Shown piece after piece: positions 18,501 to 53,389 of a stretch of 64,000 nucleotides of DNA. Made by a program: the position numbers and the translations under genes. How positions within the stretch are numbered: position 1 is the first letter of the stretch; every line of letters starts with the position of its first letter. Below the pieces are notes generated by a model. That model was not told the DNA's origin. It did no database searches and worked only from the letters and a program-made list of their open reading frames with translations. Origin of the DNA: Hyphochytrium catenoides (taxonomy: Eukaryota; Protista; Hyphochytriomycota); assembly GCA_900088475.1 (NCBI GenBank), contig FLMG01000460.1, positions 1-64,000 on the forward strand. The letters run 5' to 3'.

Positions 18501-21060
18501 CATCTGCACATACTAAGCATGGCCACGCTGAAGGTAAACCCGAATTCCCGGAGATGTGGTATAGGACGTAATCCCTTACTCTCATGGGTGCTGGGAGTGC
18601 CACAATCTGGCCCTCATGGTCCTCTGCGTGGTCGTCCAGTGTATCGTCCAAGAAGGCTTGTGATGACAACGGGACAGCTTCAGACTCCTGTCTAGCAGAC
18701 AACCCTTGAGAAACTTTTGGTACATCAAAAAGCTGAGGTCGGGGTAGAGCTCCCGCTGGAAGTCGAGAACGGGCACCAGGAGGAGACCGAGACGACCCTT
18801 CAGCTACTTTGGGATCCGCTCCTCTTGGTGCAGAATACCTCCTTACTGTTGGTGCTGGCGCTGGCGCTGGAGGTAGCGAAGGTCTAAGTGATGGAGGAGG
18901 GGCTGGAGGTGCGGAGATTGGGAGGGACGGAGGCAAAGGCATTTCACCAGGAAGTACATTGGCAGCTAAGTCGCTCCGATCTGGCTGTGAGACAAATAAT
19001 GTTAGGTTGAAACTGTGCTAGGCTTGTGCACATGCATCGCTTTTGATACCGCCCACATCCCTTTTAGTGGAACCACTCACCTCAGGGGTCGACGTCTCGG
19101 TAGGTGCCAAGGGTAGGGGAACAGCACCATAGGGATAGGGTGTGCTTGCCGGAAGTGAGCCATCGGTGCGCATCGGTGAAGTTATCCCATATCCTCCCGG
19201 CGCTGGGTGGGAGCTGAGCTGTTGGGTTCTTGTCCGCGAGGCACTTTCACCTAGGAGTGCTGGAGCGGCTGTAGATGAAGCCAATGAGCCAAGAAAGTAA
19301 AGGGGACTTTAGGGGAGACTAGGTTTAGGTCGTCGCGCTTCAAACTTTGCCCAAAGTAAGTGCTGAAGACCCCCAAACAAGATGAAGCGGGTCGTGGAGG
19401 CGTTGTATAAGTGAAAGGGCCAGCGGGAAAAGTGCTCTCGACCGCCAGCAAATCCGAATGGAGAAGAGGAGGTAAAGGCAGCTATAATCCAGAGAATTTT
19501 AAAATTATCAGAGGTCCTACCTAGTGGTGTCACGGTCTGAGGTGGTGTGGCAGTCGCTGAACTCAGCTGCTCTCTGGGCTTGCGACGGCGTTTGAGAAAA
19601 CTGGTGATTGATGCTACAACCCCTCTGCCGGCTCTTGCTTTTTGCTCTATAATTCTCCCTGAATTAGGTAACACGGGGAGTTGTCGTAGGGATGCCAGAG
19701 GAGAAATGTTTTGAGGTGAGACAGGACTCAAGTTTTGAGAAGGAAAGAGTCGCGCGGCAAAATTTGAGCTACCAGAAGGAGGTTCCAGGTCAATCAAGAT
19801 GCCGGAGCTGTCATGTGATGCGGAGCTCTGGGTCTTGAAGAGCTCTTCTTCTGTCTGTAGCATAATACTTGCTTGAGAAAATGTGACAGCCTTAGTACCT
19901 CCCTTTTGTCGCTTGCCCCGCAGCACTGCCTCCCCTGATGCCTTCTTCTTTGCTTGTTTGGCAACCTTCTTCTCCTTCTCTTTCTCCTGCACTTAAAGGG
20001 ACGTGAATCACGGGAAGGAGCAGTCAGGATTCAGCATGGTCACCTCCTACCAGTTGGGCTGATTGTAAATGAATCCTCCTGTAGTATGGCTGACTCAGCG
20101 TCAAGGAAGGTGAGACGTGGCACGAAAGGTGAGACATTCAGCCTGCGCGTTGAAAGCAAAACTTCTTGCAAAGGCGCGGCCTAATAGCAAAAGAAAGACG
20201 AAGGATGTCCATCGTCACTAACCTCCTTCTACCTCATCCTCCTTCTGCAGAAAAGGATGATTCAGTAGCTCTTCGATGCCTCGACTTCCCAATCTGCAAG
20301 TGGGATCAGGATCCAGCAGTCTGCGCAAAAAGTCTTCCAACCCTATCACTGCATTCCAAGGTCTTGGCAGCTCCCAAGCCGAGCCCGAAGGACTAACCTT
20401 GCCACTTATTATTTCGAAGAGAACGACAGCAAGACTCCACCAGTCAGCAGCAGGCCATAGAATAGGGACCTCATTCTTGTTTATGGCCTGAAACACCTCA
20501 GGCGCAAGGTACGGCCGCACGCTGTCGTCAAACTTGAGGACGCGGATGAGTCCTTCAGCGGTGTACCCATGGTCAGAGAGCACTATGTCACCACTGTCGG
20601 AAATGAAGGCAGCGGAAGGTCTTAAACATCCATATGCAATGTCACTAGCATGAAACTGATGTAAGGTATGAATAAGTTGCCTGGTCCAGACGCGAAGGAT
20701 CCCAGGCGTCAAGGCCTTCCCATTAGAGGCCGAAAGATCTAGAGATCTCGGGTAGTGCTTGCGACCAATGTAAATCTGACCGGCATGATGCTGAATGAAC
20801 TCCACCTTCCGCACACCTCGTAACCAAGGAACTTCGCATAAGGGCAAAACATCTTGGCCATCGCATCCCTCGATAGTGCCAAGCAAGTCTTTGGCAGTGT
20901 CACTGAGCGTTATATTCTGTTCCCCAAGAAATTCGGCAGCAGTCAGGCTGGAATCTGACCGGCTAATTATATATGCCTGGTTAGTCGCGTTGTGAGTGCC
21001 GACAAGCACATCGCCGTACGGTCCTTGTTCCTTCACGACAAGCTGCAGATTCTGAAGCAT
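15557..21060 (-). CDS. Dual-domain kinase: N-terminal AGC-like pseudokinase, Pro/Ser-rich linker, uncharacterised beta-rich domain, C-terminal kinase with tyrosine-kinase signatures
   Basis: C-terminal domain: LGQGNFG, VVVK, HPNII, HRDVAARN, DFG, GPIHWMAPES, SDVYMFG, RPTM. N-terminal domain: YGCLRP, DHG, YLAPE, DWWSL, RLGSRGIEELLNHPF, PFVP. All intervening exons splice in compatible phases. The true start may lie upstream (to ~21440). Confidence 0.8.
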
Positions 21061-25563: not shown

Positions 25564-27807
25564 CTAGAAGTAGCGCTCCATCAGTGCTTGTGCAAGCTCG
25601 TCTCTCTCCTTGTGAGTCAAAGCTTCGAGGACGGGGCCAGCTAAGCGTCTTCTTAGCGGACCACCGCGTACTCTGGCAACGTGATCCAAAACCTTGATGG
25701 CCTCGTCCTCTTGCCCATTTTTACAGAGTACTCGGGTAAGGGAACGAAAGGTGCCTTCAAAAAGTTTCATTCCCTTTTGTTCCAGCAACTCTAGCGTCTC
25801 ATGGACCCGGTGTGGCATTCCTGCGGCTGCATAGCATCGAAGGAGCCAGGAATAGTACTGGGAGCCTAGCGTAACTCCCTCTGCATTGGCTCTCTCCCTA
25901 AGCCCCTCCGCCTCCACGACGTTCCTGTCATGATAATAGACTCTCGCTAGATAAATAAACGCCTTTTCGGTAATCACCAGCTTCGCTTTCTTCAGTGACT
26001 CAAAGACTTCTTCAGCACCGTCAACGTCATTAGCGTAAGCACAACCGGCTAACCGAGCATAAAGCCTCTGCTCCAGAGGAAAGCTGAGCACCTCCATCCG
26101 GGCCAATAGGTCCTCTGCCAGGTCTTTATGTCCTGCCGCTGTAAGATGTGTGACCAAAGAATGATAGGCGGGACCCAGCCTTGACAAACCCAAGATTTTC
26201 TCTTGTTCTGCCTCCTTGAGGAGACCAATCGCCTCATCAAACCTCCACCTTCGCGCAAGGGTACTGACTAGAGTCAGTTTCCCCTCAATGTAAACGGAGG
26301 GCAGTAATCTGCCAGCAGATGCGAGATTGTTGAAAAGATTTACAGCACTGTCTGTCATCTGAAGGTCACCCAGAGCATCAATAGTCGACCGGATCAGAGG
26401 CTGAGTGATACCGAAGCCGGCCTCCTCCATTGCCTTGAATAGGTCATAAACTTTTTGCATGTTTCCATGATAGATATGCGCTTCAATACACACTTCAAAC
26501 GTCCGGCGGGAAAGGGAAAGGCCTCTATCCCTCATGAGACCTACCACCCCGTCCATTCCATCCCAATCGCCGACCTGTGCATAACCGTTCAAGAGCATAT
26601 CGTACGCTTTGCTCGGGATGGCTTCTCTTGGCTCGATCTCGCTAATTAGAGTCAGAGCGGTTGCTGGATCTCCAATAAAGGAGTAAGCGTATGCCAGAAC
26701 GACTCTTTTATTCGCCTCTCGTGCCTCCACTTCCATTTCGAACTTGCGATGAAGTTTCAAGAGCTTATGCACCTCCCCACTTTCCCTCGCTTCTGTCCGC
26801 TTTCGAAGTGCATTGTAGAAAGCTCCAAGCTTCACAAAGTCCCTATTACGGGCTGCTGGTTTGCTAGAGTCGCAGAGATACCAGCGGCTAACATATGGCG
26901 TAGCATGGTCTCTTATAGCTCGTAGTAGCTCTGTGACCAGATCATCACCAAATGAGAGAGAAGGATATCGTGCAACTGTCCACAGGAGGACCCTCGCACG
27001 CCAGATGTGTTTCCCAAAAACACTGTCGAGCGGAACATCATAGCCAAAGTACTGCACAGATTTCCGACTCCTAAGAAACTTGATCAAAACCATCCCTTCT
27101 GCTTTTAAGGCGGCCGCAACGTTCTCCTTTATATAGCAGTCAAAGGGTTCCAGTGATCTTTGCAAAGGTCGTCTGTCTAAATGCGCCAAGACCTCCATTC
27201 TGAGAACCAACTTGGAAGTAAGGAAAGTAGATTTAGCTGTTGACAGTACCATGTGGCGCAGTTTCTCCGTTGTGACGTTATCATTCTCATTAAGAAGCTT
27301 CCTCATAAGCGCAACGATGAAGGTCAACACCGCGTCATCTACTTCAGGATGCTCAGCACTAATGTGAAGCAGGTGCTCGGAGGCTAAGAGGGCGGAGGGC
27401 CCAGAGAAGAACTTCGCCATACCCGAAATAGCCGCTTTGTGATTGGACACGTGCCTCGAAATGAAGAGAGCTGTAAGCAGGGCATCCGCCTGACGTCTGT
27501 CACCCTTATGATACAGCTCTACTATCTTAGATACGGCCTCTGTTGTATGTAGACGTCCGTTGGGCGACAGAGGTGCTGGCGTCCGCAGCCGGTGACTTGA
27601 TTGTCCTTTTGACGAGCCAGACACAAGTTGCAAGTGGTCATTAGAAGTAGCATGCAGTGGTTTCTCAACCGTCCTAAGGGTTTCAACAGAGAATGCACGC
27701 AAGAAGATCGTCCCGATATCAACAGCCCTAGGCCTACGGTGCCCGATAAGCTTTTGTGCACAGCTTCTGCCAACTTGCGTCAAGATTGGCTGAGCCAGTT
27801 TAGGCAT
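25564..27807 (-). CDS. Pentatricopeptide-repeat-like helical repeat protein, probably mitochondrial
   Basis: Uninterrupted ORF of about 747 aa from the first ATG. ~35-aa repeats such as AYDMLLNGYAQVGDWDGMDGVVGLMRDRGL, TFEVCIEAHIYHGNMQKVYDLFKAMEEAGF and YYSWLLRCYAAAG. Confidence 0.85.
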   Translation of the reverse strand: MPKLAQPILTQVGRSCAQKLIGHRRPRAVDIGTIFLRAFSVETLRTVEKPLHATSNDHLQLVSGSSKGQSSHRLRTPAPLSPNGRLHTTEAVSKIVELYHKGDRRQADALLTALFISRHVSNHKAAISGMAKFFSGPSALLASEHLLHISAEHPEVDDAVLTFIVALMRKLLNENDNVTTEKLRHMVLSTAKSTFLTSKLVLRMEVLAHLDRRPLQRSLEPFDCYIKENVAAALKAEGMVLIKFLRSRKSVQYFGYDVPLDSVFGKHIWRARVLLWTVARYPSLSFGDDLVTELLRAIRDHATPYVSRWYLCDSSKPAARNRDFVKLGAFYNALRKRTEARESGEVHKLLKLHRKFEMEVEAREANKRVVLAYAYSFIGDPATALTLISEIEPREAIPSKAYDMLLNGYAQVGDWDGMDGVVGLMRDRGLSLSRRTFEVCIEAHIYHGNMQKVYDLFKAMEEAGFGITQPLIRSTIDALGDLQMTDSAVNLFNNLASAGRLLPSVYIEGKLTLVSTLARRWRFDEAIGLLKEAEQEKILGLSRLGPAYHSLVTHLTAAGHKDLAEDLLARMEVLSFPLEQRLYARLAGCAYANDVDGAEEVFESLKKAKLVITEKAFIYLARVYYHDRNVVEAEGLRERANAEGVTLGSQYYSWLLRCYAAAGMPHRVHETLELLEQKGMKLFEGTFRSLTRVLCKNGQEDEAIKVLDHVARVRGGPLRRRLAGPVLEALTHKERDELAQALMERYF

Positions 27808-28119
27808 CCTATCAACCTCACCTCCCAGGCTGGACAGCACACGGTGCTGCTGCCTTACCGTTGACCCTCCAAGTGATGGCGGGAGATGCCTTCTACCTTA
27901 ATCTTAAGGTATAGAAACCTCATTCTGTGAAACTACCAGCAGTCACCGCTATCCCAGCGACCAGGTCAGCAAGTGACCTTTAGTCTGGCATCTGGGAGGT
28001 CATCGAGGCTCAAAAATTGCGAGTCAAGAAACTTCAGAACCAATTATCATTGCCAAAGGTAGACATCACTGCCACCCAGTAGATAGCCAGTAACGACTTT
28101 CGGGCCAACAAAATGTCGT

Positions 28120-28958: not shown

Positions 28959-30929
28959 TTAATAACCGTCATGTGAAGAAGCGTGCCCCGACGTGCTGGT
29001 AAGGGTGTCGGACACACCCTGAATGCCAGCTGTTGTTGACTTTTGGATACCATTTTCGCCGTTATTCATGGAGGGACCCCTGAAAGCCTTTGCCTCAGCA
29101 GGCGACTTAAGCAGAGAATTGACGCCCTGATTGGCTGTCATTGTGGCAGCGGCCCCTGCTGCGTCTCTTGCCGGTTGATTAGGATGAGCGAGAGTTGAAA
29201 CTAAGGTATCAGACGACCGTAACCCAAGGCCTTGGCTGCTGACTTGAGACTCCTCCTCGTCGTCACAGTCTTCTGCTTCCTCATCCTCGCTGTCGTCGCA
29301 ATCTTCTGTTTCTTCCTCAACCTTCTCGTCGTCCTCGCAGTCTTCCGTTTCTTCATCCTGCTGGTTCTCACGGTCTTCCGTCTCTTCATCCTGCTCGTTC
29401 TCACAGTCTTCATCCTGCTCGTTCTCATAGTCCTCGTCCGAGTCCACTTGTGCCTGCTGCAGCTCCGCCTCGTCCTCCTCTTCACAATCCTCAACTAATG
29501 GTGGTGACGTCCCGGTCACAGTCTCACCAGCTTCGTAGATAGGAGTTGGTGCTTTCGGAGGTGAAGGCTGTCCGTCACCGATGTTTGAACCAGGTGTAGG
29601 AGTTGGTGCTTCCGGAGGTGAAGAATGTCCATTGCCGCTGTTTGTACCAGGTGCGGGACTGGGTGGTGCCGCAGGTGGAGAGTATCCGTCACCACTGATT
29701 GCACCAGGTGCAGGACTGGGTGGTGCCGGATGTGAAGAATGTCCGTTGCCGCCGCTGTTTGTACCAGGTGTAGGAGTTGGTGCTTCCGGAGGTGAAGAAC
29801 GTGCATTGCCGCTGTTTGTACCAGGTGTAGGAGTTGGTGCTTCCGAAGGTGAAGAACGTGCATTGCCGCTGTTTGTACCAGGTGTAGGAGTTGGTGCTTC
29901 CGGAGGTGAAGAACGTCCATTGCCGCTGTTTGTACCAGGTGCAGGACTGGGTGCCGCCGCAGGCGATGAGTATCCGTCACCGCTGATTGTATCAGGTGCA
30001 GGACTGGGTGGTGCGGGAGGTGAAGCATGTCCGTTGCCGCTGTTTGTACCAGGTGCAGAACTGGGTTGTGCCGGAGGTGAAGAACGTCCGTTGTCGCTGT
30101 TTGTACCAGGTGCAGGACTGGGTGCTGCTGGAGGTGAAAGATTTTCGTAGGTTGGCCGTTGTGCCCCAGTATCTTCTTGTGGACCCGGACTGTTGATTTG
30201 CCCACCAATGGGAGCTAGTTGGTCCCAATTAGGTGGGCTCTGTGCAGCTTCTTTTTCTGCTGTACCTGGGACCCAAGGTACGACAGCCTCCACCCCGGTA
30301 GAAGAACTTGGAAGGGGAGTGGGTGCAAGGGCGATGACCATGGGTGATGGTGGCATAATTTTCCCGTCATCTGTTACGTCATCTGCATCTGGCACTTTGA
30401 TGGGATTGCTAGAGCCTGGTCGCAGGTTGTTCCCACTGGAGCTTGGAGTGGGTGCCGAGTTGTGTGGGACCGGCACTGGGACGGGGGTACTGCCTCCTCC
30501 TCCAGATCCGGGTATACTTTCCTCTGGATATGCAGACCCCCCGTCACGGGTGCTTGGAACGTCTGGGGTTTCTGGACTAGAGGAGCTCTCCAAACTGATT
30601 TCAGGGGAGGAACTCTCAGCGCCAATACCCGAAGGCGGTATAATAGAAGAGCTAATTTCACTCGAGGCGGGACCACCACTTTTCAATACGCATCCCGGCA
30701 CACCGCTTCTGACTATGCCACAGCTCGAGCCATGAGGGAGGCCTTCCTGTGGTCCTGGGCAGTTGCCATTAGGCATCCCACCTACACATATAGGAACCGT
30801 TGCACAGAACGTCCCGACACCTTCAACAGAAACCTCAAGCTGTCCCGCCACGCAGTCAAGGCGGCTGGCCTGCCCTAAAGGGATAGTAGACGCTAGCCCC
30901 ACAAGGGTAAGGAACTGAATTATCTTCAT
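28959..30929 (-). CDS. Secreted mucin-like protein with an oomycete-type Cys-rich N-terminal module, Pro/Ser/Gly repeats and an acidic region
   Basis: 656-aa intronless ORF. Signal peptide MKIIQFLTLVGLASTIPLGQA; module VSVEGVGTFC...PIC...GNCPGPQEGLPHGSSCGIVRSGVPGCV; tandem repeats; no TM segment. Confidence 0.9.
   Translation of the reverse strand: MKIIQFLTLVGLASTIPLGQASRLDCVAGQLEVSVEGVGTFCATVPICVGGMPNGNCPGPQEGLPHGSSCGIVRSGVPGCVLKSGGPASSEISSSIIPPSGIGAESSSPEISLESSSSPETPDVPSTRDGGSAYPEESIPGSGGGGSTPVPVPVPHNSAPTPSSSGNNLRPGSSNPIKVPDADDVTDDGKIMPPSPMVIALAPTPLPSSSTGVEAVVPWVPGTAEKEAAQSPPNWDQLAPIGGQINSPGPQEDTGAQRPTYENLSPPAAPSPAPGTNSDNGRSSPPAQPSSAPGTNSGNGHASPPAPPSPAPDTISGDGYSSPAAAPSPAPGTNSGNGRSSPPEAPTPTPGTNSGNARSSPSEAPTPTPGTNSGNARSSPPEAPTPTPGTNSGGNGHSSHPAPPSPAPGAISGDGYSPPAAPPSPAPGTNSGNGHSSPPEAPTPTPGSNIGDGQPSPPKAPTPIYEAGETVTGTSPPLVEDCEEEDEAELQQAQVDSDEDYENEQDEDCENEQDEETEDRENQQDEETEDCEDDEKVEEETEDCDDSEDEEAEDCDDEEESQVSSQGLGLRSSDTLVSTLAHPNQPARDAAGAAATMTANQGVNSLLKSPAEAKAFRGPSMNNGENGIQKSTTAGIQGVSDTLTSTSGHASSHDGY
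29540..30140 (-). repeat. Coding tandem repeat, 60-63-bp unit, about 10 copies (SSPPEAPTPTPGTNSGNGH-like)
   Basis: Recurrent GTTTGTACCAGGTG at ~60-nt spacing, directly visible. Confidence 0.95.
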
Positions 30930-32543: not shown

Positions 32544-33140
32544 CTATAATTTGTCTCGAGCAGCCAGAAAGCGAAAGCGGCATGCCAGATCTCTCTGCCT
32601 TCTCTTTTCTCTCAGCTTGTCCTGGTGTTCTTGAGCAGCAGCACCCAGTCCGGTATTGCAGAACGTTAAAGTCATTTGTAGAAATTGTACCTCGTGCTGG
32701 AACCTAAACACTAAGCTTTCGTCGATATCTCTGTTCGCCAAGGGCGGCAGAAGCATCTTTGTATCCATACAAGTAGGAAACGCAGCGGTGAAGCATGTTG
32801 GTTGTCAGCGATTCGTCCTGTATTTCTGTATTAGCTAGCTCAAGACGAGGGGAAGCAGGTGATAACGTAATGGGTGGTTGTGAAATTGTGGAGTCCAGGT
32901 GCAAAGCCGTTTCCCCTTCAACACTGCAAGTACAGCTTAGAGAACTGTGGTCGCTCTTCGCTCTATTCCCAAAAGAAGCTTGACGTGAGGGTGACATCGC
33001 TAATGAGATGCAAGAGCCCAGTTCACTGTGGTGAACTACATCATACCAGTCTCAGGATGTGGCTATTAGTGCTGTCTACTGCAGTTGGATTGGAATTGGA
33101 GCAGTCGTTGTTGTCTATAAGGGTTATGCTGGCCAGCCAA
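32544..33140 (-). pseudogene. Decayed ankyrin-repeat gene fragment
   Basis: GETALHL, then ANTEIQDESLTTNMLHRCVSY, then after a frameshift KMLLPPLANRDID resemble consecutive ankyrin repeats broken by indels. Confidence 0.4.
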
Positions 33141-33204
33141 CGCTCAAGGGACATATTCAGCGTCGGTGCACTAGGGATCCTTAGTAGGCACGATGTCAGG
33201 TCAT

Positions 33205-36200
33205 TTAATGTCCTACTTGATCTCCTAGCACAATATGAGTCCCGACTGCCCTTGGGACGGTCTCGTCCTCCTCTTTGGCACCGCCAGACGCTTCCCCTTC
33301 TCTAAGCAATTCCTCATACAGCTTCTTAGCTGGTGTTCCGAGACCCCTGCGGATCCACCTAAAATAACAGTGCAAAGGGTTACTAATATGGCATAACGCA
33401 GAGTACGAAAAACGGGATTATATGAGTATACCGCCGTCTTCTGCAGAGCTTCAGCTTCCTCAGGCCATCCTTGTCATTAATCTCCCCTTTCCTCGCCGTC
33501 GCGCTTTTGAAGTGCTTTATCTTGAAAGTTCTGGACATGGACAGGAAGGAGTAGTTGTACTCCCAACCCTCTGCGTCGCAGTTCGGAACAGACATGTCAA
33601 CTTCCCAGTCCGCTAAGTCAAAGTTAAACGCTCCTTCCGTTCGGGACATCGTGCTAAACTTAAGAGGGTCTTGAGGGAAAAGATGGGCTCGCGTAGATCC
33701 AAACCCTGATATCAGATTGTTCCTACAAAAAATGCAGCAAGATGCAGTATGAGGTGAGTAGGGTAGAGGTACAAAGAGCTGCAGCTAGGAACGTTGGGCT
33801 AAAGGGACATGGGACTTTGAAGACATGAGCGTGTCAACAACGTAAAAATACCGAGCACAATAAGCCCCAGCCGAGTCAAAGCTGTCAATATAACTTCGAT
33901 GAGATGTAGGGTTCACCTTTGGTTCTCCCAAACCTCAGCCTGCGCCGGCGGAAGAGAACTTATCAGTTCTCGAAACTTCAGGTCCCGCTTAGCTCTAGCC
34001 TTCGCAGATACTAGCTCAGAAGGGACCTCCACCAACCGCTTTAATGCCTTTAAATTGTGGTCAGCACTGGAGAAGGCGAAGCCTGTGGTGCAGCAGACAA
34101 GTTGTGGTTAGGAATGACGCAGATGTAGATGATTCACTCTCAACGTGAGATATCATGAAGGACCAAGTCACGAAATCTATGTGGGGCATGAACAAAGGAA
34201 ACAGAGATCGTAGATAATACACAGGGACATGGGGTACAGAGGCTCATAGATGCACGTTGCAGTCCACACAAAGATTGATGCCAGCAGAATGTGTACGAAT
34301 TCGGGCCCCAATCGCTGCAGCTCAATCGATGCAGTCACATTGGGCTATTCCTAACCTTTATGCTGTGCACCAGCGTGCTCCTTGATGTCAATATCAAAGT
34401 CATGATCGTCATCTTCATACGCCTCCTCAAGTGACCTGTGCCGAGGGAGAAACTGTTAGCAACTAGTTCCGAATCAAAGAGGCCACGGACTCCTCGCACT
34501 CTCCCGATTCAAGCTGGAGTGCCTCCTCTCTCACTTTTGGCGCTTGGCGTACTTGCCTGAGTTCATTTGCTCTACATAACTCTACCCCGCACCACCTCTC
34601 TCTTCGCGGTCACGTATACGCGAAACTCTGTGGTTCTCTTTCTCTCAACTACTCTCCAAAACTAAACTCCCTGTTCACGGTGTCAACTCTAGGCTGCTTG
34701 AAACTTACCTATCCGCCACGAAGAAGGTAGTTTGCTCCACGGGTGGATTCCAGTCCAGGTTTGAGGTGTCAACCTTGTACCAAAAGGCCTCTCGAATCAA
34801 ATGATAATATTCGGGGTAGAACTGTTGGTAGACTTCAGTCGGGACATGGCAGTCAGCGAGACCTAAGGGATGGTCTATTTACCTCTCTTTTCCATCCTTT
34901 CCAGTAGATATCTCTAGCCAGGGCCATAACGGAGGTTACTATCACCACGATATAGAACATCGGAATCTCGTAAAGATATGGGAAAGCCCAATCCATGACC
35001 GAAGGCATTCCAGCATAGTTGAATGCTATAGCGCTTAAGCCATATACTATCAATGACAGCCATACAGCTAAATGTAGAGGCCAATCAAAGGTAGCTGCAT
35101 TGAAGATGAGCTTTAAACTGGACACCACCATCATTGCTGTCCTGTGTCGGTTGTGGAAGATTAAGCGATGACTATCATAGAGAGTAGCGGCATAACTTGC
35201 TAATATTACCAGGAGACAGCACCACAGTCCCAGAAGCCATAGAATGCACCGTTATGGTCGAAGCGGCCGTAGAACCACAGGGGGACAAAGACGCAGATAA
35301 CTCCTTCGAAAAGTGCTTCGGCAAACCTGGAATACTCCTGTTATTGAGAAGAAAGGCTAGGGTACTGAATCAAGAGTGAGAAAGCGTCACCCTGGATCGC
35401 AGTTACGGCCCAAGAAGGGACTGAAGAAGCTGAGGAATGAATGAATACACCAAGCCTCAGATCGTACTCGAGAGGACGGATTAAGAGCATTGGCCCGAGC
35501 CGGCGATGCAAAGAGAGACAACAAGCTCCCTTCAAAGTAGAGACAGCCACACCTATGTAAGGTGGCAATGAACTGGACACAGAGTGACGAGGTTCCCTGA
35601 AAACCATTGAGAAAAGGATATACAGGCAGACTCAAGGAAAGCCGAGAGGGAGTGGTACAAAGGCACAGACGACCAGAATATAGCCCACCATGCCCAGAAC
35701 ACGCCAGTACTGAAAAGCTCATTTTTCCATCCTGCTCTGTAGATTGCCGGATAACGTTCAGCCATCACGTCGGGAACCTCCTGATCCAAAATGGAGACGG
35801 CGACGATGGGAACTGCTGTGTACAATGTGTTATAGCTGCATGACAGAATGCGGTAAGGCTAGATCGTGGATCATAGCGTAGACCTCACTAGATAGAATAT
35901 GCTTTTAAGGTACAAACAAATGAGGGCGGATGCCATAAGGGAAAAGCTAGATTGAGGAGGAGAACACGGGCTGGGGCATGACAACAGGCACAGAAAAAAA
36001 GTGCCGGCTGCCAAGAGAAGCATGCTTTTGCCAAGTCAGCGACTTACAGGTTGATCCATGCATTGTTATAGAAGCGGCTGCCAGACAACGCCGCGTACAT
36101 CGCATAGAGATAGAGACACCACTGAAAGAGTACGTTCTTGTATATGATGTAGAGACAGGTCTTGGACATCCGAAAGTAGCACCAATGACCATGTACAAGG

Positions 36201-39200
36201 AGCAGGCGTTTGAGATAGGCAAACTGCGCTATGGCATAGTCGCTATTGTTCACGGCTTGAGCACCCTCTTGCCCTGATATGCCTATACCGACGTGGGCTT
36301 CCTGAATCATGCTAACATCGTTAGCGCCATCTCCAATAGCTAGCGTCCGAACATCCAGAATGTTGTCCTTCACTAGCGCGACCATCTGGGCCTTCTGCTT
36401 GGGGCTCACACGGCATCCCACCAGGGCCACACAGTGCTGAGCGAATTCCAGCAGAAGCTAGGAGGGGAGACCATAAATTAGCATAGCAACGCAGACCACT
36501 ACACCTTCTCTTGCTATTTTGTACATGACTACGGCAGCGGAGATGCAAGAAAGTGAAGGAGACAAGACTCATTTTCCCACCTGCTGAAGATACAAACTAT
36601 CAAAGATGAGTGAGAGCGAGGCTCCATCAATAATGAGGGCCTTAGGAGCAATTGCTGGCCTTTCTGCTGGGAGAAGATGGCCGTTCACCTCCCAGTACCC
36701 GGTCATTTCCTCCGCGTACGCCCTCAACGCCTTCTTAAGTGCACCCTTTGTTGGGAAGTTGCTGTTATTGATGATGATCCGGTCCATATCATTGCTCAGG
36801 AGTTGGCACGCGAAAGCGATGTTGATAGCTGTCTCTTCCTTGTCTCCAGTTAATACCCAGAGCTTGCAAGCGTTGCAGATAGCACAAGTAACAGGAGTAC
36901 ACAGCAGTGAAAGAACGGAGTGGGTCGCGGGTGATGAAACGAGGACGGGAAGAGAGCCATCAGCAACAGGTGAGAACTAAGGACGCTGTGCAGGGACAAC
37001 GCTGGAGGATGGTGGAATCAAACACAACAACGAATACGATTGAGTAAAGTTTCGCTTAGAGACCATCGTGAAGGGTGATAGAAGGCTACCTTGATCCCTG
37101 CCTTCATGAGATCGGATATGGTTTGAGGCACCCCGTCCTGGAGACGATCCTCGATAGCCGTGGCTCCTAAGAGCATGAGCCCTTGCTCAAGTCGATTCTC
37201 CAACCTATCAATCTTATTGTCCTCGCCTGAAAAACATACAGATATCAAGTTAGAGGCATCACCCGTGGTCTTCATCTTCTCAAGGCAATGTTGACAACTT
37301 TGAGGACAACGGATCTAAACAGGCTCAATCGAATGTGGGAAGCTTTAAACTCCATGTACCTAACCAGCCGATGTCGGGGTACCCTAAGCAGCTGGGCCAT
37401 ACCTCTTCCTCTCTTGTCCACTTCTTCCAAGTCCAAGAGAACAGCGTGATATTCCGTCGCCCATTCCTCGTATTCGTCCTCATCTAGCTCCCTGTAAGCC
37501 AGGACCAAGGTCCGCAGGCCGTCCAAAGCAAAGCGTTCAAGGTGCTCAACAGTGCTTTCAACGAGTTGTTCAGCATTTGTCTCTCGATTAATCCGCTGCA
37601 GCATCACGCTGTCCGCCCCCTTTGAATACAGGCGAAGAGAACCTATAAGAGAGATTGGAGATCGTAAGTGGAAGACATCACCTCCAGATAAGTGAAGGAC
37701 AGCTGAGGGTGGCCGCCTCGTTTCTGCTCACCATCAGCGAAGCGAATCACTGTCGACATCCGCTTCCTAGTACTATTGAACTCTATTACATCTAGCACTT
37801 CGAACTCTTGGATGCCTCCCTTTGTCTCCACAAATATCATTCCGGGACGCCGGTCTATGAACTTGTAGCCCAGGAAAGCGGCCCCTAAAAGCAAAGACCA
37901 TCGAGGTCATTAGTCTTCTATCGTTGAATAGGAAGGAAGAGAACAAAAGCAACCATGTCACTCAGACTGGCGGCTGTACAGCAGAAGAGCCCGTACAGTA
38001 GTACTATTGAGCACAGTGTACGGCCCTGAGGCAGTCGATCATCCACAAGTAGCGCCGACGAGAAGGAGCGGGAAGGATGAGATGCTGATAGCGATAACAA
38101 CCACAGAAATGGCACCTCCTGACAGAACTAAAGGGAGCTATTGATAGGATGAGGAGGAAGAGGAATCACACCAAGCCAAGATGGGCCCAGACCTGCAACT
38201 AGGGCTTGTTCGTCAGGTGAAGAGGCAGACCAAGTGACTTGTGTGCGGTCTTCACTGCCCTGATGGTGTTCGGGAATGACAGTGTGGCAGATAGAGAGAT
38301 GAAGGAGAAACTCCTCAATCTTGCTTGCATGGTCCTGTCCCCTTGCGCCCTAACCACGAGGTTATCGTAAGAAAGCTATGAGCATTAATCAATTGGTTAA
38401 ACTTCCGACACTGTGCTACCTCTCTGTCAAGTTTGAACTCATCGTCGGGATCTAAGAACTTCACATTTGGTGGTTGATCGACCTCGAGGCTATCCGCCTT
38501 GATATCTCTCAGAGAAGCCTGGGAAGGGCAGGAAAGACAGAGAGAGCAAATGATTGGATCCCATCCTTCTTGTCGCTTTCAATAGTGCCCCTGAGTACAT
38601 TGGAAGTATGGAACAAGTGGGCTGAATGTACAGCCAGAAGAAAGGCTACTATCTTCCGCTTTCTGCTCTCACCTGCTTGCCAGCCCTCTTTATGGCCACT
38701 CTTCCAATCTCCGTGGTTCCTTTCCCGTAAGCTACTCCGTTTATAGAAAATTTTCTAAAGTCCATTATATTAGCTGTCAGAGTCCCCGTCTTGTCAGAAA
38801 AGATATGTGAGATCTGCCCCAGCTGGTCATTTAGATCCGGATTACGTGCGTTAGCAGGCATGTCCGTCGGCTCATAGTACATCTTCAAATCGTTGGAGAT
38901 AAACCAGGCCTGCCACGTCTTAGTCACCGCTATACTTACGTATAGAGTGATGGGGACGAAGGAGGACGTGAGGCCCCAGAAGAAGAAGACGTAGATTATG
39001 AACCCTAAGGCGTTGTTGAAGAACGGGTAAGGGGGAGAGGTGTCCTGGAGTATGAGGTAGGTCGCTGTATCCAGGTTGGTGGCCACCCACCATGAGCACA
39101 GAGCGCCAGCCAGGAGACAGATTACAAGGAGAGTGAGAATGATGTACACTATCTTGCGATTGATAATCTCAGCAATCTGCCCTATCTTCTGTGGGGTTGG

Positions 39201-40853
39201 CTTTGAGCTCTGCATGATCTTAGTGTCCACACCTACCAGAGAGGATTTGAGTACTCAATCTCTTAGGTGACCTCAAGGCTTAAGGGCCATCCGTAGCACT
39301 AGCACCTCTCTCATTGCCACCTTAACCCTGTGAGATGTGATAGATTGGACGCCTTCTCAACTGCTAAGCGGCAAGGGTCTCTCTTCCTCTTCGATCCATT
39401 TCTTATCTGCTCCTGTTTTCTTCCTTGGCTCACCTGTGTTCACCACGACTCCGTAGGCGTAGTCGACGTTCCTCAAGGTGGTTCCCCTTAGTAGCATGTT
39501 CTTGAGATCGATGTTGAAGCTTTCTCCCTTCTCGTCGATGTATCGGCCTCGAAAGCTGTTTGTGTCATGATTGGGAGCTTCACACTGAATTTCTCCTTTG
39601 ACACGCTCCACGTCCTCGTCCTTCATTACTGTTCCTAGCAGGCATTGCAGGCTCTCGCGAACTTTCAGATTTGTCTCTCCATCAAGACTCTTGGTCTCTA
39701 CAAAGCAAACCCCTTGGGGTGGGACGTCCTCCTTCTCCGCCACAGAGATTATCAAAAGATCAGCTGGGGCCGTGCATCGATTCTCAACCTGTAAGGTATG
39801 GGAGAGAGTGGTGAGAAAGCGGCTGAAGAAACAATTCTTCACCCACGAGATGTATAACCTTACCTTGACAATATCTCCAACGCATATCTCACGCCATTGG
39901 GTCTTAACAAACTGCCTTTGCTGGGGATCGAAGCGCAGCGTCTTGGCTGAGTTTGCCCTTTTGTCGGCCTTATGCCGCTTTCTATCCGCCATGGCCTCAA
40001 AGATCCCGTCGACAGCTATCACGAAGCCCAGAGCGAAATACGTGACGGGGACACCTCCGGTAATAGAGACAGCAGGGATCATCTGACCAATACCTACCAA
40101 GAGGAAGTAAAAGTTGGCCGTCTGTTTGAACTCCTTCAAGAGATGGAGCGGAAGAAAGTTCCACACGGTGTACTTTGACGTGATCACCGTATTTCCTGCG
40201 AATTTGAACTGCCCGTTCTTCTCTCTGTCATTGACGAAGAGTCGTCGAGGAAGAGGCTTAGGAGCTGACGACTCTTCTCGCTGATTTGTGGTAGGATACC
40301 ATGTGTCTTCGGAGTTGTTCTGGAGTACCTCACTCTTTGGGTCAAAGCTCGGGAAGACGATGCGGCTGATCTGAGCGGTAGAGGGTAGAGAGTCATCAGT
40401 GGAGAAGCATCTGGCTTAGGTGGCGTCGGCCATCTATCAGAGGGTTTAAGAGAGGAAGAAGATGATTGGGAAGAGATATTAGCGGCCCCAAGGAGGGCTC
40501 AATGAAAGAAGCGACCTCATCTTCCGAGCGTCTTCTGAGAAGAAAGATAAGGAGAGCCAGATGCCCTTTCTTACCCGCTTAATGGAGCTGTAGAGTGATT
40601 CTGAGGTAGTCTTTGGTACGCTGTCTCCGGCGACTGGTGCATCAACAAGAGCAACGCCTTCTGGCACCGTCTGAAAAGGTCTTCCTGCACAGGTGATAAA
40701 TTTCACATCTCTTGTGCTTTGCAACTGCTCCAGCAAGGCTGAGGGTTTGCGGCCTAGTTTCACGGCTTCTGCATCAGACACTCCTGTATCCACTGGACCA
40801 GCCTCCACATAGTCGCTCCCAGAAGGCGAAGCCAAGATTCGCCCGGAGTCCAT
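33205..40853 (-). CDS. P4-type ATPase (phospholipid flippase) with a C-terminal dysferlin (DysF) domain, multi-exon
   Basis: [98 protein letters not shown]. The frame continues into EVWENQR...DWEVD...DAEGWEY...RRRRWIR and stops at TAA 33207-33205. Confidence 0.95.
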
Positions 40854-42498: not shown

Positions 42499-43766
42499 TC
42501 ATGCTGTGGGTACCACAGGCTCATCTGGGCGCTTCCTCCATACACCCTCAGGAGCAAGAATCGCACAGGCTAGCATCACGCGGTTAATGGAGCTGTGTTC
42601 ATCCCCGTTCTCTCTCTTCAGCATTCCTTGGACGCGCAGTGCTTGTGGAATCAGACCCTCTACCCTGCCTCTCATGTCTGGGAAGAATTTTGCTCCAAGC
42701 ATAGCACCATAAAGTCGGAAGGGCAGTGCGAAATGGGCTTCATTCAGCGCTTCTCTACTACGCTTGCGGAGCTTGGTCTCTCGTATACCCCCTGTCCACT
42801 GATCCATCCACGCATCTAACCCCCAGCCCAGAGGATCAGACGTCACTCGGGGAATGAAACTTTGGAGAGAGTTTGAGAGGGCATTGATCTCCCTCTCCAA
42901 AGATGGTTTACCTCCTGCGTGGTGGATCAGTTTGAACACAATAAGAGCACTTAGCGCATCGTCATTTGGAACAGCAAAGCGGCCATGTGGTGTATCGTCA
43001 ATGGGAGAGCAGTCGCTGTTGATTTTCCATCGAAAACCACCATGCTCTGGATCGTAAAAGTGAGGAAAGGTTGCCTTTGCTATTCTCGCGGCTTGATGAA
43101 GCCTTTTCTTGTCACCAGACACTTGTCCCAGTCGCAGCAGCGCAAACAGCCATTTGTCAATGTAGTGCCAGTACATCCCATCATAGCGCATTCCCAAGTC
43201 CGTCGTCTGTCGCGCTTTCTTCTTTCCGATACGAAGTCCCACGAAACCTGTAACATCGTACTCAGAGGAGGGGCTTGGCAACATGGGATATTGTTCTGAT
43301 CGTGGACGCCCTAAGCCGATATGAACCGCGTCGACCAATCGATCGGCAGCGGCAAGATACTGGTCCCTCTCGGGTTGCACCATTGCCAACGTTGTGTAGG
43401 CCATTACGGCGAAAGCATCTGTCCACAAGTATCGCCTATCACCATTAGAGCAATCACCTGCTTCCTCTTCAGGGAGCGGCTGAGGGAATCTACAACTACC
43501 TCCATCATCATCCTTGAAAGGACCATAAACGTCCTGAAGTAGACCTTCGGCCACAGCAGCATCCGCCATTGGCATTCCAGTCGTCATGAAGGACTTCACC
43601 TTCTGTCGTACGTCTCTTACTCCAGCAGCGCACCTGTCATAGACGAGGAGTAGCTCTCAAACCACCGATCTTGGTGCTATCGTCGAATACCTTTAAAGGG
43701 TCAAACCGACGAGAGAGGATACCTGTAGTGGCGCACTACTAGCCAGCACCGGCGGAGTTTGACCAT
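42499..43766 (-). CDS. Uncharacterised conserved protein (RRYLWTDAF family), probable alpha-helical toroid fold; likely short 5' exon plus one intron
   Basis: Single long exon with RRYLWTDAFAV, GLRIGKK, DGMYWHYIDKWLFAL, WKIN, LPFRLYG and HSSINRVM. The upstream exon MVKLRRCWLVVRHYR joins in phase via GTATCC...TATGACAG. Confidence 0.75.
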
Positions 43767-51907: not shown

Positions 51908-53389
51908 ATGCAGACCACCTTCCAGCAAGTGCAGCAGCGTGTGAGCAAGCTGTGCAGGCTCCTAGGGACAGATGTACCTCTACAGGCGCCAATGCTGGGC
52001 TGCTCCACTGCTGAAATGGCGGCTAGGACTTCTCTCGCAGGTGGCCTGGGTTCCATGAACTACTCTTTTCTTCAACCAGAGGCCATGAGGGAGGCCTCCC
52101 GAGAGTTAAGTGCGGCAGTAGATCGGCTATCAGTCAGGGCACGAAGCCAGGAGGCACGGACACCATTCAACTTCAACTTCTTTGCTCATCCCAGGCCTGT
52201 AGAAGATCCGGGAAGAAGAGAGCGCATACAAGCCACTCTCTCCCGTTACTACCAGGAGATGAACATTGATCCCTCCTCCATCTCACTGGATATGCAAAAC
52301 CGTACTTTTGGCCCGGATATTCTGAAGACTTTGCTTGATATCAAGCCTTCCGTGGTCAGCTTCCACTTCGGACTTCCCTCTGAAGTGGATAACGTTGTTC
52401 ATCTCCTTCAAGAGGAAGGAGTGAAAGTATTGTGCACTGCCACAACCGTGGATGAAGCGCAGTGGCTGGAGAAGAAGGGTGTTGATGTCATCATTGCCCA
52501 GGGCTATGAGGCAGGCGGCCACCGAGGCACCTTCCTGCCCAGTCAATACACCACCATGCCTGAGAGCAATATTGGCACAATGGCTCTAGTCTCACAGATT
52601 GTTGACGCTGTGAGTGTGCCTGTCATTGCCGCCGGAGGTATCGTGGATGGTCGAGGAATAGCAGCCGCCTTAATGCTGGGTGCTTCAGGTATTTCCCGTG
52701 CATTCGATGTTATGCTTTGGCTTTAGTGCCGCCTTAGAAGCCGTTGCCTTTAGGGCTTGTTATCTCCACCACACTGCTCACCCCAGTCACCCGTCCTCCT
52801 GTGCTATACATCCGCTCAGCCTCTAAGTGTATATCACATATTGTGTTTCATCAAGAAGACGTGCTCATCTTATCAAGAAGTTCACATCCTAAATATGGTT
52901 GTCTCTCTCCCTTCTCCTCTGCTGGAGGCGCTCACACTAACTCCATACAACGTGCGACTGTGTCCTATAGGTGTACAGCTAGGCACCGCTTTTATGACGT
53001 GCAAGGAAGCACTCACCAATCCCGTCCATCGTAAAGCCTTAAAAGAAGCTCAGCACCGCTATCGACCGACAGCACTTAGCCAAGCTTTCTCCGGTAGGCC
53101 AGCGCGTGGGATAGTCAACCGGTACATGGAAGAGACTCAAGACATGAAGATCCCGTACACAGATTTCCCCCTCTGGAATGCCTTTACTAATCCACTTAGA
53201 TCTCGAAGCGCGAAAAACGGGTCAGAAGATTTTCTCTCCATGTGGTGCGGGCAGAGCCCTCCTCCTCTCAGTTATTCGGAAAAGGGTGCAGATGAGGTAC
53301 TCCAGCAGCTCCTGGCGGGGTTTGAGGAGATAATACCTAGGAACCTCGTAGACCTCAGGCTTAGTAGACAGGAGTCTGATTCGCTTTAG
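51908..53389 (+). CDS. Nitronate monooxygenase (2-nitropropane dioxygenase family, FMN), 2 exons
   Basis: PLQAPM, GGLGS, FNFNFF, VSFHFGLP, AQGYEAGGHRGTF, PVIAAGGIVDGRG, GVQLGTAF, FSGRPARG, MWCGQ. Phase-1 GT-AG intron at 52689-52970. Confidence 0.93.

Follow-up and report, generated by a model that had tools for sequence, protein, structure and literature searches.

Does a lipid flippase of Hyphochytrium catenoides carry, on the same polypeptide, a dysferlin-type (DysF) domain directly behind its autoinhibitory tail motif? The question is raised by a minus-strand gene within a 64,000-nucleotide stretch of DNA from this protist (GenBank assembly GCA_900088475.1, contig FLMG01000460.1, positions 1 to 64,000 of the forward strand), which is called the window hereafter. 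Our analysis suggests that this flippase gene most likely ends in a conserved DysF domain right after the autoinhibitory motif GFAFS. Its tail exons form one open reading frame (ORF), both halves of the encoded product have recognizable homologues, and the fused arrangement is conserved under purifying selection in a second species. At the DNA level, the flippase-DysF fusion appears well supported.

Spliced structure of the flippase tail

The sequence-only reading of this locus had spliced the 3ˊ exons by hand, using GT-AG junctions of compatible phase to carry the frame from the last transmembrane helix into a DysF signature. Splicing by script reproduces this result. Six minus-strand exons between 35134 and 33205 combine to form a frame of 1056 nucleotides (nt) with zero internal stops, which encodes 351 amino acids (aa). 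The cumulative exon phases are 0, 2, 1, 2, 2 and 0, and GT..AG borders are present at all five tail introns, which together span 33359-34882. The features of this region are given below in the coding direction, where L001 denotes a genomic contig from another organism that carries the same exons and is described in a later section.

35134-34883, minus strand: exon with the last flippase transmembrane helices, matching PhoLip_ATPase_C positions 162-246/251 at an E value (E) of 3.9e-8; the true 5ˊ end of the exon lies further upstream
34882-34822, minus strand: intron of 61 nt, GT..AG
34821-34709, minus strand: exon E2, cytosolic segment after the tenth transmembrane helix (TM10; 20 protein letters not shown), with phase-compatible GT-AG junctions; its 3ˊ end, EQTTFFVAD, is kept in L001
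34708-34436, minus strand: intron of 273 nt, GT..AG
34435-34356, minus strand: exon E3, acidic linker of 80 nt (also 80 nt in L001), the last base of which opens the Gly codon of GFAFS
34355-34083, minus strand: intron of 273 nt, GT..AG
34082-33917, minus strand: exon E4, carrying the next three features
34082-34069 plus the G base at 34356, minus strand: GFAFS, the autoinhibitory tail motif of Drs2/ATP8-type flippases, forming the first residues of exon E4 and kept in L001
34068-33937, minus strand: 44-aa linker from GFAFS to DysF, within exon E4 together with both motifs, with 55% aa identity to L001
33936-33917, minus strand: first DysF motif, EVWENQ(R), at the 3ˊ end of exon E4, with the R codon split by the intron
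33916-33723, minus strand: intron of 194 nt, GT..AG
33722-33432, minus strand: exon E5 of 291 nt, DysF-like core with GFGS, HLFPQDP..FS, F.F....W.VD, D.EGWEY..F, a basic loop and CRRR
33556-33443, minus strand: polybasic loop of 38 aa between GWEY and RRRRW, with a net charge of +7
33431-33359, minus strand: intron of 73 nt, GT..AG
33358-33205, minus strand: exon E6, carrying the last two features
33358-33346, minus strand: start of exon E6, which completes the fourth Arg, adds the invariant Trp (RRRR-WIRR) and closes the DysF domain
33345-33205, minus strand: acidic C-terminal extension of 46 aa with a TAA stop at 33207-33205; the L001 tail is shorter and also acidic

The spliced product runs from the last transmembrane helices through HK-GFAFS and the linker into EVWENQR...DWEVD...DAEGWEY...CRRRRWIRR, and from there into the acidic tail. 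It contains the quoted string of 47 residues (letters not shown) as well as 11 residues (not shown) between EVWENQR and DWEVD. GFAFS lies ~70 aa downstream of TM10. The linker behind it, which had been estimated at ~40 aa from the sequence, measures 44 aa, and the DysF-like domain is 109 aa long. GFAFS and EVWENQ(R) share a single exon (E4, 166 nt) with no ATG between them.

An independent contig, taken from an assembly of a 2017 DNA run (run X3), spans 32900-35591 in one piece and differs from the window by five bases and one 1-bp indel. The indel, at 34584, is located inside intron 2 and leaves the frame unaffected. Because this contig spans the region unbroken, the fusion region contains no assembly gap or mis-join, and an assembly artefact is ruled out. 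Two other candidate explanations were rejected. A pseudogene is ruled out by the open frame together with purifying selection in two species, and an overlapping gene on the plus strand was discarded given that the plus-strand ORFs have no Pfam match.

A divergent DysF domain behind the autoinhibitory motif

Downstream of GFAFS, the DysF motifs occur in their canonical order: ENQR, LP.D..WS (here FS), W.W....W.VD (here F.F....W), D.DGW.Y..F, and RRRRW.R (here CRRRRWIRR). The residues of the Trp/Arg stack of DysF domains have been listed previously (PMC10476172), and its aromatic positions are kept in the tail as F.F....W, GW and RRRRW.R.

To compare the tail with verified members of the domain family, metagenome contigs were scanned for the triad ENQR-gap-GWxY-gap-RRRRW, with spacings taken from the window and from TECPR1 residue numbers (PMC10476172). 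The scan yielded 10 metagenome loci, eight of which were scanned with Pfam; the two others are near-copies of scanned loci. Seven of the eight matched PF06398 (Pex24p, the Pfam family covering DysF) above the gathering score, and these positive loci lie in TECPR1-like, ferlin, VPS13-like and C2 contexts. An alignment of eight triad-selected DysF domains (A4), which includes one locus without a Pfam match, was then searched against the whole PDB. Its matches are confined to TECPR1 (8P5P, 4.7e-29), myoferlin and dysferlin, with E values ranging from 5e-29 to 1.5e-9. In these canonical domains ENQR is invariant.

The tail domain aligns with this set. When A4 was compared by hhalign with A1, the family alignment of exon E5, the probability was 97.5% and E was 7.3e-12 over 66 columns, extending from ENQR to GW.Y..F. 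A hidden Markov model (HMM) built from seven verified DysF domains gave 28.8 bits for the spliced tail of the window, 36.4 bits for the L001 tail and 18.5 bits for P0003, a second relative that is described below. With the same model, 20,000 shuffled versions of the tail gave at most 12.0 bits. The domain by itself scored 32.9 bits, and none of 5000 decoys in which the triad was held fixed reached this value (mean 2.7, standard deviation 3.9, maximum 22.5). In addition, the DysF HMM was scanned against every one of the 2173 open segments that the window has in six frames, and the exon E5 segment gave the only significant match. Because of the hhalign result, the HMM scores above those of shuffles and decoys, and the single six-frame match, we read the tail domain as a divergent but genuine DysF domain, which upholds the DysF signature that the sequence-only reading had recognized behind GFAFS.

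A protein-language-model atlas provides a separate view. The nearest Pfam-bearing clusters of both exon E5 and P0003 are PF06398 clusters, with scores of 0.91-0.92 and 184-194 shared features, and further down the atlas list are other PF06398 architectures (TECPR1-like, VPS13, C2).

The metagenomic loci are informative about the domain family in their own right. They include a protein of >2600 aa (L004, Ga0066256_1002249), a C2+DysF protein (L010), a TECPR1-like protein with two DysF domains, a PH domain and tectonin repeats (L006), and a multi-C2 ferlin (L005/L011). The very long protein of L004 looks VPS13-like; the Pfam scan covered its DysF part. Among these metagenomic carriers, DysF is repeatedly attached to lipid-handling proteins. 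Two further metagenome ORFs (L002/L009), which are near-identical to each other, have a clear ENQR...GWQY...RRRRW domain in which PF06398 is not called at E 0.01. In other words, the curated PF06398 model misses some real DysF variants.

Two relatives of the tail domain

An exhaustive phmmer search of exon E5 against 1.84 billion representative sequences returned two true relatives, P0001 and P0003, and the other matches are repeat artefacts. The family of this domain comprises three known sequences: that of the window, that of L001/P0001, and that of P0003. Word-indexed protein searches with A1, the P0003 region and A3 found no new relatives, and none of 147 pattern matches obtained by searching metagenome contigs with A1 was confirmed.

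P0001 is encoded on L001, the 963-bp genomic contig mentioned above, which represents a 58%-identical relative. This contig carries the end of exon E2, followed by exons E3, E4, E5 and E6 in the same order as in the window. The lengths of exons E3, E4 and E5 are identical in the two species (80, 166 and 291 nt). The L001 introns are found at the same positions and have GT-AG borders, and they differ in length (55, 72, 75 and 72 nt); the frame does not require reading through them. In both species, joining the split codons yields exactly the residues required by the motifs, namely G in GFAFS, R in ENQR and the fourth R in RRRR, and the first full codon of exon E6 then encodes the invariant W. 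Read-through without splicing would instead give RRRRY followed by a stop in the window and in L001 alike.

Between the window and L001, the proportion of nonsynonymous differences (pN) is 0.27 both in the linker and in the DysF part. The proportion of synonymous differences (pS) is saturated, at 0.84 in the linker and 0.87-0.95 elsewhere. The low pN relative to saturated pS indicates purifying selection at the protein level on the linker as well as on the DysF part.

The second relative, P0003, is located on a 1394-bp contig from JGI metagenome 3300045300. Its ENQR motif continues into sequence resembling exon E5 without an intron, which indicates that exons E4 and E5 encode one domain. Neither GFAFS nor flippase sequence was found within 170 aa upstream of this domain, which places the DysF subtype in another protein context as well.

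The flippase body

Upstream of the tail, the conserved blocks of a P4-ATPase are all present in order, and frame-compatible GT-AG junctions exist between all of them. Catalytic motifs are legible in the minus-strand open frames, namely DGET, PITL (in the fourth transmembrane helix, replacing PISL), DKTGT, TGDK and GDGAND. When the exon bearing DKTGT was compared with PDB sequences, the best match was ATP8A1 (3.8e-31), with ATP8B1, Drs2p and Dnf1/2 also among the best, and weaker matches to ATP11C, ATP9 and Neo1. The following features were assigned.

35135-40853, minus strand: multi-exon P4-ATPase body comprising the N-terminus, the A, P and N domains and transmembrane helices 1 to 8/9; boundaries are approximate and some junctions ambiguous
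39360-40415, minus strand: Pfam match to PhoLip_ATPase_N (PF16209), E 6e-22
36047-36457, minus strand: PhoLip_ATPase_C (PF16212) positions 1-67, on the first of three successive exons
35556-35858, minus strand: PhoLip_ATPase_C positions 68-139, on the second
exon ending at 34883, minus strand: PhoLip_ATPase_C positions 162-246/251, on the third

The gene looks like a class-1-like P4-ATPase whose pump is catalytically intact, and we estimate the length of the flippase at roughly 1500 aa. The earlier view of the locus as a lipid flippase with a GFAFS tail agrees with the N- and C-terminal Pfam domains, the catalytic motifs and the presence of GFAFS in the tail.

Several junctions of the body are ambiguous from the DNA, for example those at ~38170 and 35250-35170. 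At 35170-35260 on the minus strand, two open frames overlap, both of which are plausible for transmembrane helices 7-8, and the junction requires an intron of 50 nt (35249-35200) or of 38 nt (35209-35172). A short intron at ~39790-39865 (minus strand) in the exon of the A domain, after GDIVK, is free of stops and in frame. The region 40415-39360 can be read as a single open frame of 352 aa, and retention of this A-domain intron would add ~25 aa with no truncation. At 35562-35708, the X3 assembly gives two contigs of 147 bp at a depth of ~226 each, compared with ~366-419 in the flanks. One of these matches the window exactly, and six differences separate the other from it. The pair of contigs has the look of allelic or haplotype variation within the flippase gene.

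Departures from canonical DysF domains and the likely lipid preference

In a joint alignment with canonical domains, the family of the tail domain keeps G[FW] after ENQR, LP.D..[FW]S, the aromatic ladder before W.VD, D.EGW.Y..F and [VC]RRRRW.R. There is a short deletion ahead of the aromatic ladder. The most prominent departure is the loop between GW.Y..F and RRRRW, which comprises 38 aa here compared with the 15-25 aa allowed by the search pattern and 19-24 aa in the set used. The corresponding loop of L001 is also 38 aa long, has a charge of about +8 by hand count, and, like that of the window, ends in a conserved [RK]KLKLC.

Two known modes of lipid binding by DysF domains can be compared with these features. 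Among human DysF domains, only the N-terminal DysF (N'DysF) of TECPR1 binds sphingomyelin, and it does so via the exposed residues W77 and W154 (PMC10476172). W77 directly follows ENQR, the loop before RRRRW carries K152/K153/W154, and both tryptophans are needed for sphingomyelin binding (PMC10476172), which takes place on damaged membranes (PMC10476172, PMC10476171). The tail of the window has Asn directly behind ENQR, as does that of L001, and its tip loop, though basic, contains no Trp. The DysF domain of Pex30, on the other hand, binds phosphatidic acid via the two corresponding regions, 296-304 and 378-395, the latter being the counterpart of the 38-aa loop, and this preference is common to the DysF domains of Pex28, Pex29 and Pex31 and to the inner DysF of dysferlin (PMC12101078). 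Set against this type, the loop preceding RRRRW carries a strong positive charge (+7, and ~+8 in L001) and aromatic residues are not conserved. Given Asn at the W77 position and a polybasic loop without Trp, an electrostatic preference for an anionic lipid is more likely than sphingomyelin sensing.

A possible mechanism and its alternatives

The explanation that we tentatively favour, at a little less than even confidence, is that an intact class-1-like flippase acquired a divergent DysF domain in its regulatory tail, and that lipid binding by this domain shifts the tail between docked and released states. PI4P (phosphatidylinositol 4-phosphate) or phosphoinositide relief of autoinhibition is known for Drs2p and ATP8B1, and the tail described here might be a built-in, lipid-gated counterpart of such relief. 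In the predicted arrangement, ~70 aa after TM10 lead to the GFAFS plug, the conserved linker of 44 aa joins the plug to a DysF finger of 109 aa whose polybasic tip loop is enlarged, and the acidic end of 46 aa follows. The polytopic part of the protein would hold DysF beside its own membrane, as in the Pex30 family, and the finger would bind the cytosolic leaflet of that membrane. The bound lipid would most likely be anionic, such as phosphatidic acid, phosphatidylserine or phosphoinositides. Since DysF is only 44 residues from the GFAFS plug, which in both Drs2p and ATP8A1 docks among the P, N and A domains, its membrane engagement would bias the tail between docked (inhibited) and released (active) forms, and there might be feedback from the pump's own anionic product.

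This proposal draws on the established role of GFAFS in the autoinhibition of Drs2p and ATP8A1/2 (10.1101/606061, PMC11775268). In Drs2p, the motif covers the nucleotide site where the P, N and A domains meet, and ~29 further residues pass between the N and A domains, where truncation activates the pump (10.1101/606061). An extended form of the same idea, which we consider unlikely to hold in full, is that the protein acts as a one-polypeptide leaflet homeostat. DysF would then be a general lipid-reading module in the lineage, and its polybasic finger would read an anionic lipid on the product side and, via the linker, move the GFAFS plug out of or into the nucleotide-binding cleft.

Several observations weigh against a lipid-gated flippase-DysF fusion. 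The evidence for the splice junctions is entirely comparative. With a linker of 44 aa, DysF might be able to reach the membrane while the plug stays docked, in which case coupling is not required by the geometry. The sequence-only reading had looked to HMM and structural matches as a check on the DysF assignment, and these gave a mixed outcome. The DysF HMM built here detects the spliced tail, but Pfam found no DysF/PF06398 match in exons E4, E5 and E6 taken singly or in P0003, and phmmer and hmmsearch with exon E5, A1 and A3 against PDB sequences gave chance matches only. The DysF finger fold consists of two long antiparallel strands with a long loop wrapped around them. AlphaFold2 was run on partial pieces, each of them missing a terminal strand, and returned a predicted local distance difference test score (pLDDT) of 35 for the P0003 piece and 52 for exon E5 with an 11-row alignment; Foldseek found no match in the PDB with these low-pLDDT partial models. 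Finally, the comparison set of DysF domains was picked with motifs from this tail, a circularity that the fixed-triad decoys control in part.

Taken together with the retrieval of only two relatives from 1.84 billion representatives, the negative Pfam and PDB searches and the unusable AlphaFold2 models could mean that the tail is not a DysF domain at all and that a W/R-rich pattern arose by chance or convergence in a lineage-specific extension. We find this scarcely credible in view of the hhalign match and of the HMM score above shuffles and fixed-triad decoys; moreover, all three motifs are in canonical order with the positions of the aromatic stack kept. It is distinctly improbable that flippase and DysF are not fused in the main transcript, with separate mRNAs or with DysF exons confined to a minor isoform. 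Such an arrangement would fit the comparative nature of the junction evidence and the immediate stops that intron retention after exon E3 or E4 produces in the window (HKG-stop and ENQR-stop). However, these retention stops are not conserved, the L001 intron after exon E3 being an open frame of 72 nt. Exon lengths and phases are kept in L001, and splicing is needed in both species to obtain the invariant R and W. Moreover, with GFAFS and ENQR located in one gap-free exon that has no ATG between them, a separate DysF gene would either lose its first motif or carry GFAFS.

If the fusion is real, the DysF domain could serve other ends. It is possible, with a modest chance of being correct, that it is a targeting or retention module, which would keep the pump in a particular subdomain of its membrane or at a contact site, or bring in partners, with no direct effect on GFAFS autoinhibition. 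The DysF of Pex30-family proteins is the cytosolic part of integral membrane proteins and is needed for their contact-site localization via phosphatidic acid (PMC12101078), and P0003 has the same DysF subtype without an upstream GFAFS. Nevertheless, an additional membrane anchor would be superfluous in an integral membrane protein, and the placement of DysF directly after the plug, together with the conserved linker (55% identity, pN 0.27), suggests joint action. Alternatively, the tail might work as TECPR1 does, responding to membrane damage or to sphingomyelin exposed on the cytosolic side by activating the flippase, so that asymmetry is re-established. Scrambling with subsequent re-flipping makes a coherent scheme, and the N'DysF of TECPR1 provides a precedent. 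This proposal is very improbable, however, as it requires equivalents of W77 and W154, and the tail has Asn after ENQR and a polybasic tip loop without Trp.

Significance

This locus bears on two questions: how the tails of P4-ATPases are released from autoinhibition, and what the general role of DysF domains is. Lipid binding by DysF domains was reportedly first shown in 2023-2025, for TECPR1, Pex30 and dysferlin. By placing DysF 44 residues behind GFAFS, a naturally occurring fusion under selection provides a 'Rosetta stone' link between both questions, and it may indicate that flippase control is directly coupled to lipid sensing. The protein also offers a compact and testable system, consisting of one polypeptide plus Cdc50, for asking whether lipid binding by DysF can gate a flippase. 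In addition, the fusion points to the tip loop as the part of DysF that might evolve to change lipid preference.

Neighbouring genes

Other genes in the window were annotated as follows. A 656-aa ORF at 28959-30929 on the minus strand has no Pfam match.

20218-21060, minus strand: protein kinase exon
25564-27840, minus strand: PPR-repeat protein
42499-43599, minus strand: GlcNAc 2-epimerase-like ORF, weak
51908-53389, plus strand: nitronate monooxygenase-family gene, interrupted by a single short intron

Comparison with known systems

The sequence-only reading had considered a P4-ATPase-DysF fusion to be undescribed, and among the papers searched we likewise found none that joins a DysF domain with a flippase or a dysferlin domain with a P4-ATPase, although automatic annotation of the architecture may exist. 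One natural P4-ATPase fusion is well described, that of the P4-ATPase-guanylate cyclase chimeras (P4GC) of alveolates and stramenopiles (PMC13466520, PMC6592433), and a recent survey of these chimeras does not mention DysF. The partner in P4GC is a large catalytic cyclase with its own transmembrane domains, whereas here it is a small DysF domain with a putative lipid-binding or regulatory role.

Among DysF proteins, ferlins such as dysferlin and myoferlin share the DysF motifs and the Trp/Arg stack with the tail, and in vitro phosphatidic acid is also bound by dysferlin through its inner DysF (PMC12101078). They differ in having nested DysF pairs within multi-C2, tail-anchored proteins, in contrast to the single C-terminal DysF on a polytopic pump. 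The N-terminal DysF of TECPR1 (8P5P) belongs to the same domain family through A4 (E 4.7e-29) and resembles the proposed tail in coupling a lipid sensor to an effector, a likeness that presupposes lipid sensing by the tail. TECPR1, however, is soluble, senses sphingomyelin through W77 and W154, neither of which is found here, and has the ATG5-ATG12 E3-like complex as its effector. The Pex30/Pex24 peroxins (PF06398) are closer in topology in that they are integral membrane proteins with a cytosolic DysF beside their own membrane. To bind phosphatidic acid, the tip of their DysF uses basic and aromatic residues from two places, behind ENQRR-W and in the loop preceding the final strand (PMC12101078). 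The tip loop described here is ~14-19 aa longer, strongly basic and without exposed aromatics. Furthermore, the membrane part of the peroxins is a reticulon-homology region and has no enzyme activity, whereas that of the protein in question would be an ATP-driven lipid pump.

With regard to the pump itself, the nearest known systems are Drs2p, ATP8A1 and ATP8A2. The type of flippase body is the same, as the best PDB matches are ATP8A1, ATP8B1 and Drs2, and these proteins likewise carry [G/A][F/Y]AFS a few dozen residues after TM10. Their tails are released by PI4P or other phosphoinositides near TM10, by partner proteins or by phosphorylation. These tails end in short disordered segments, whereas the flippase of the window would continue into a folded DysF domain 44 residues past the plug.

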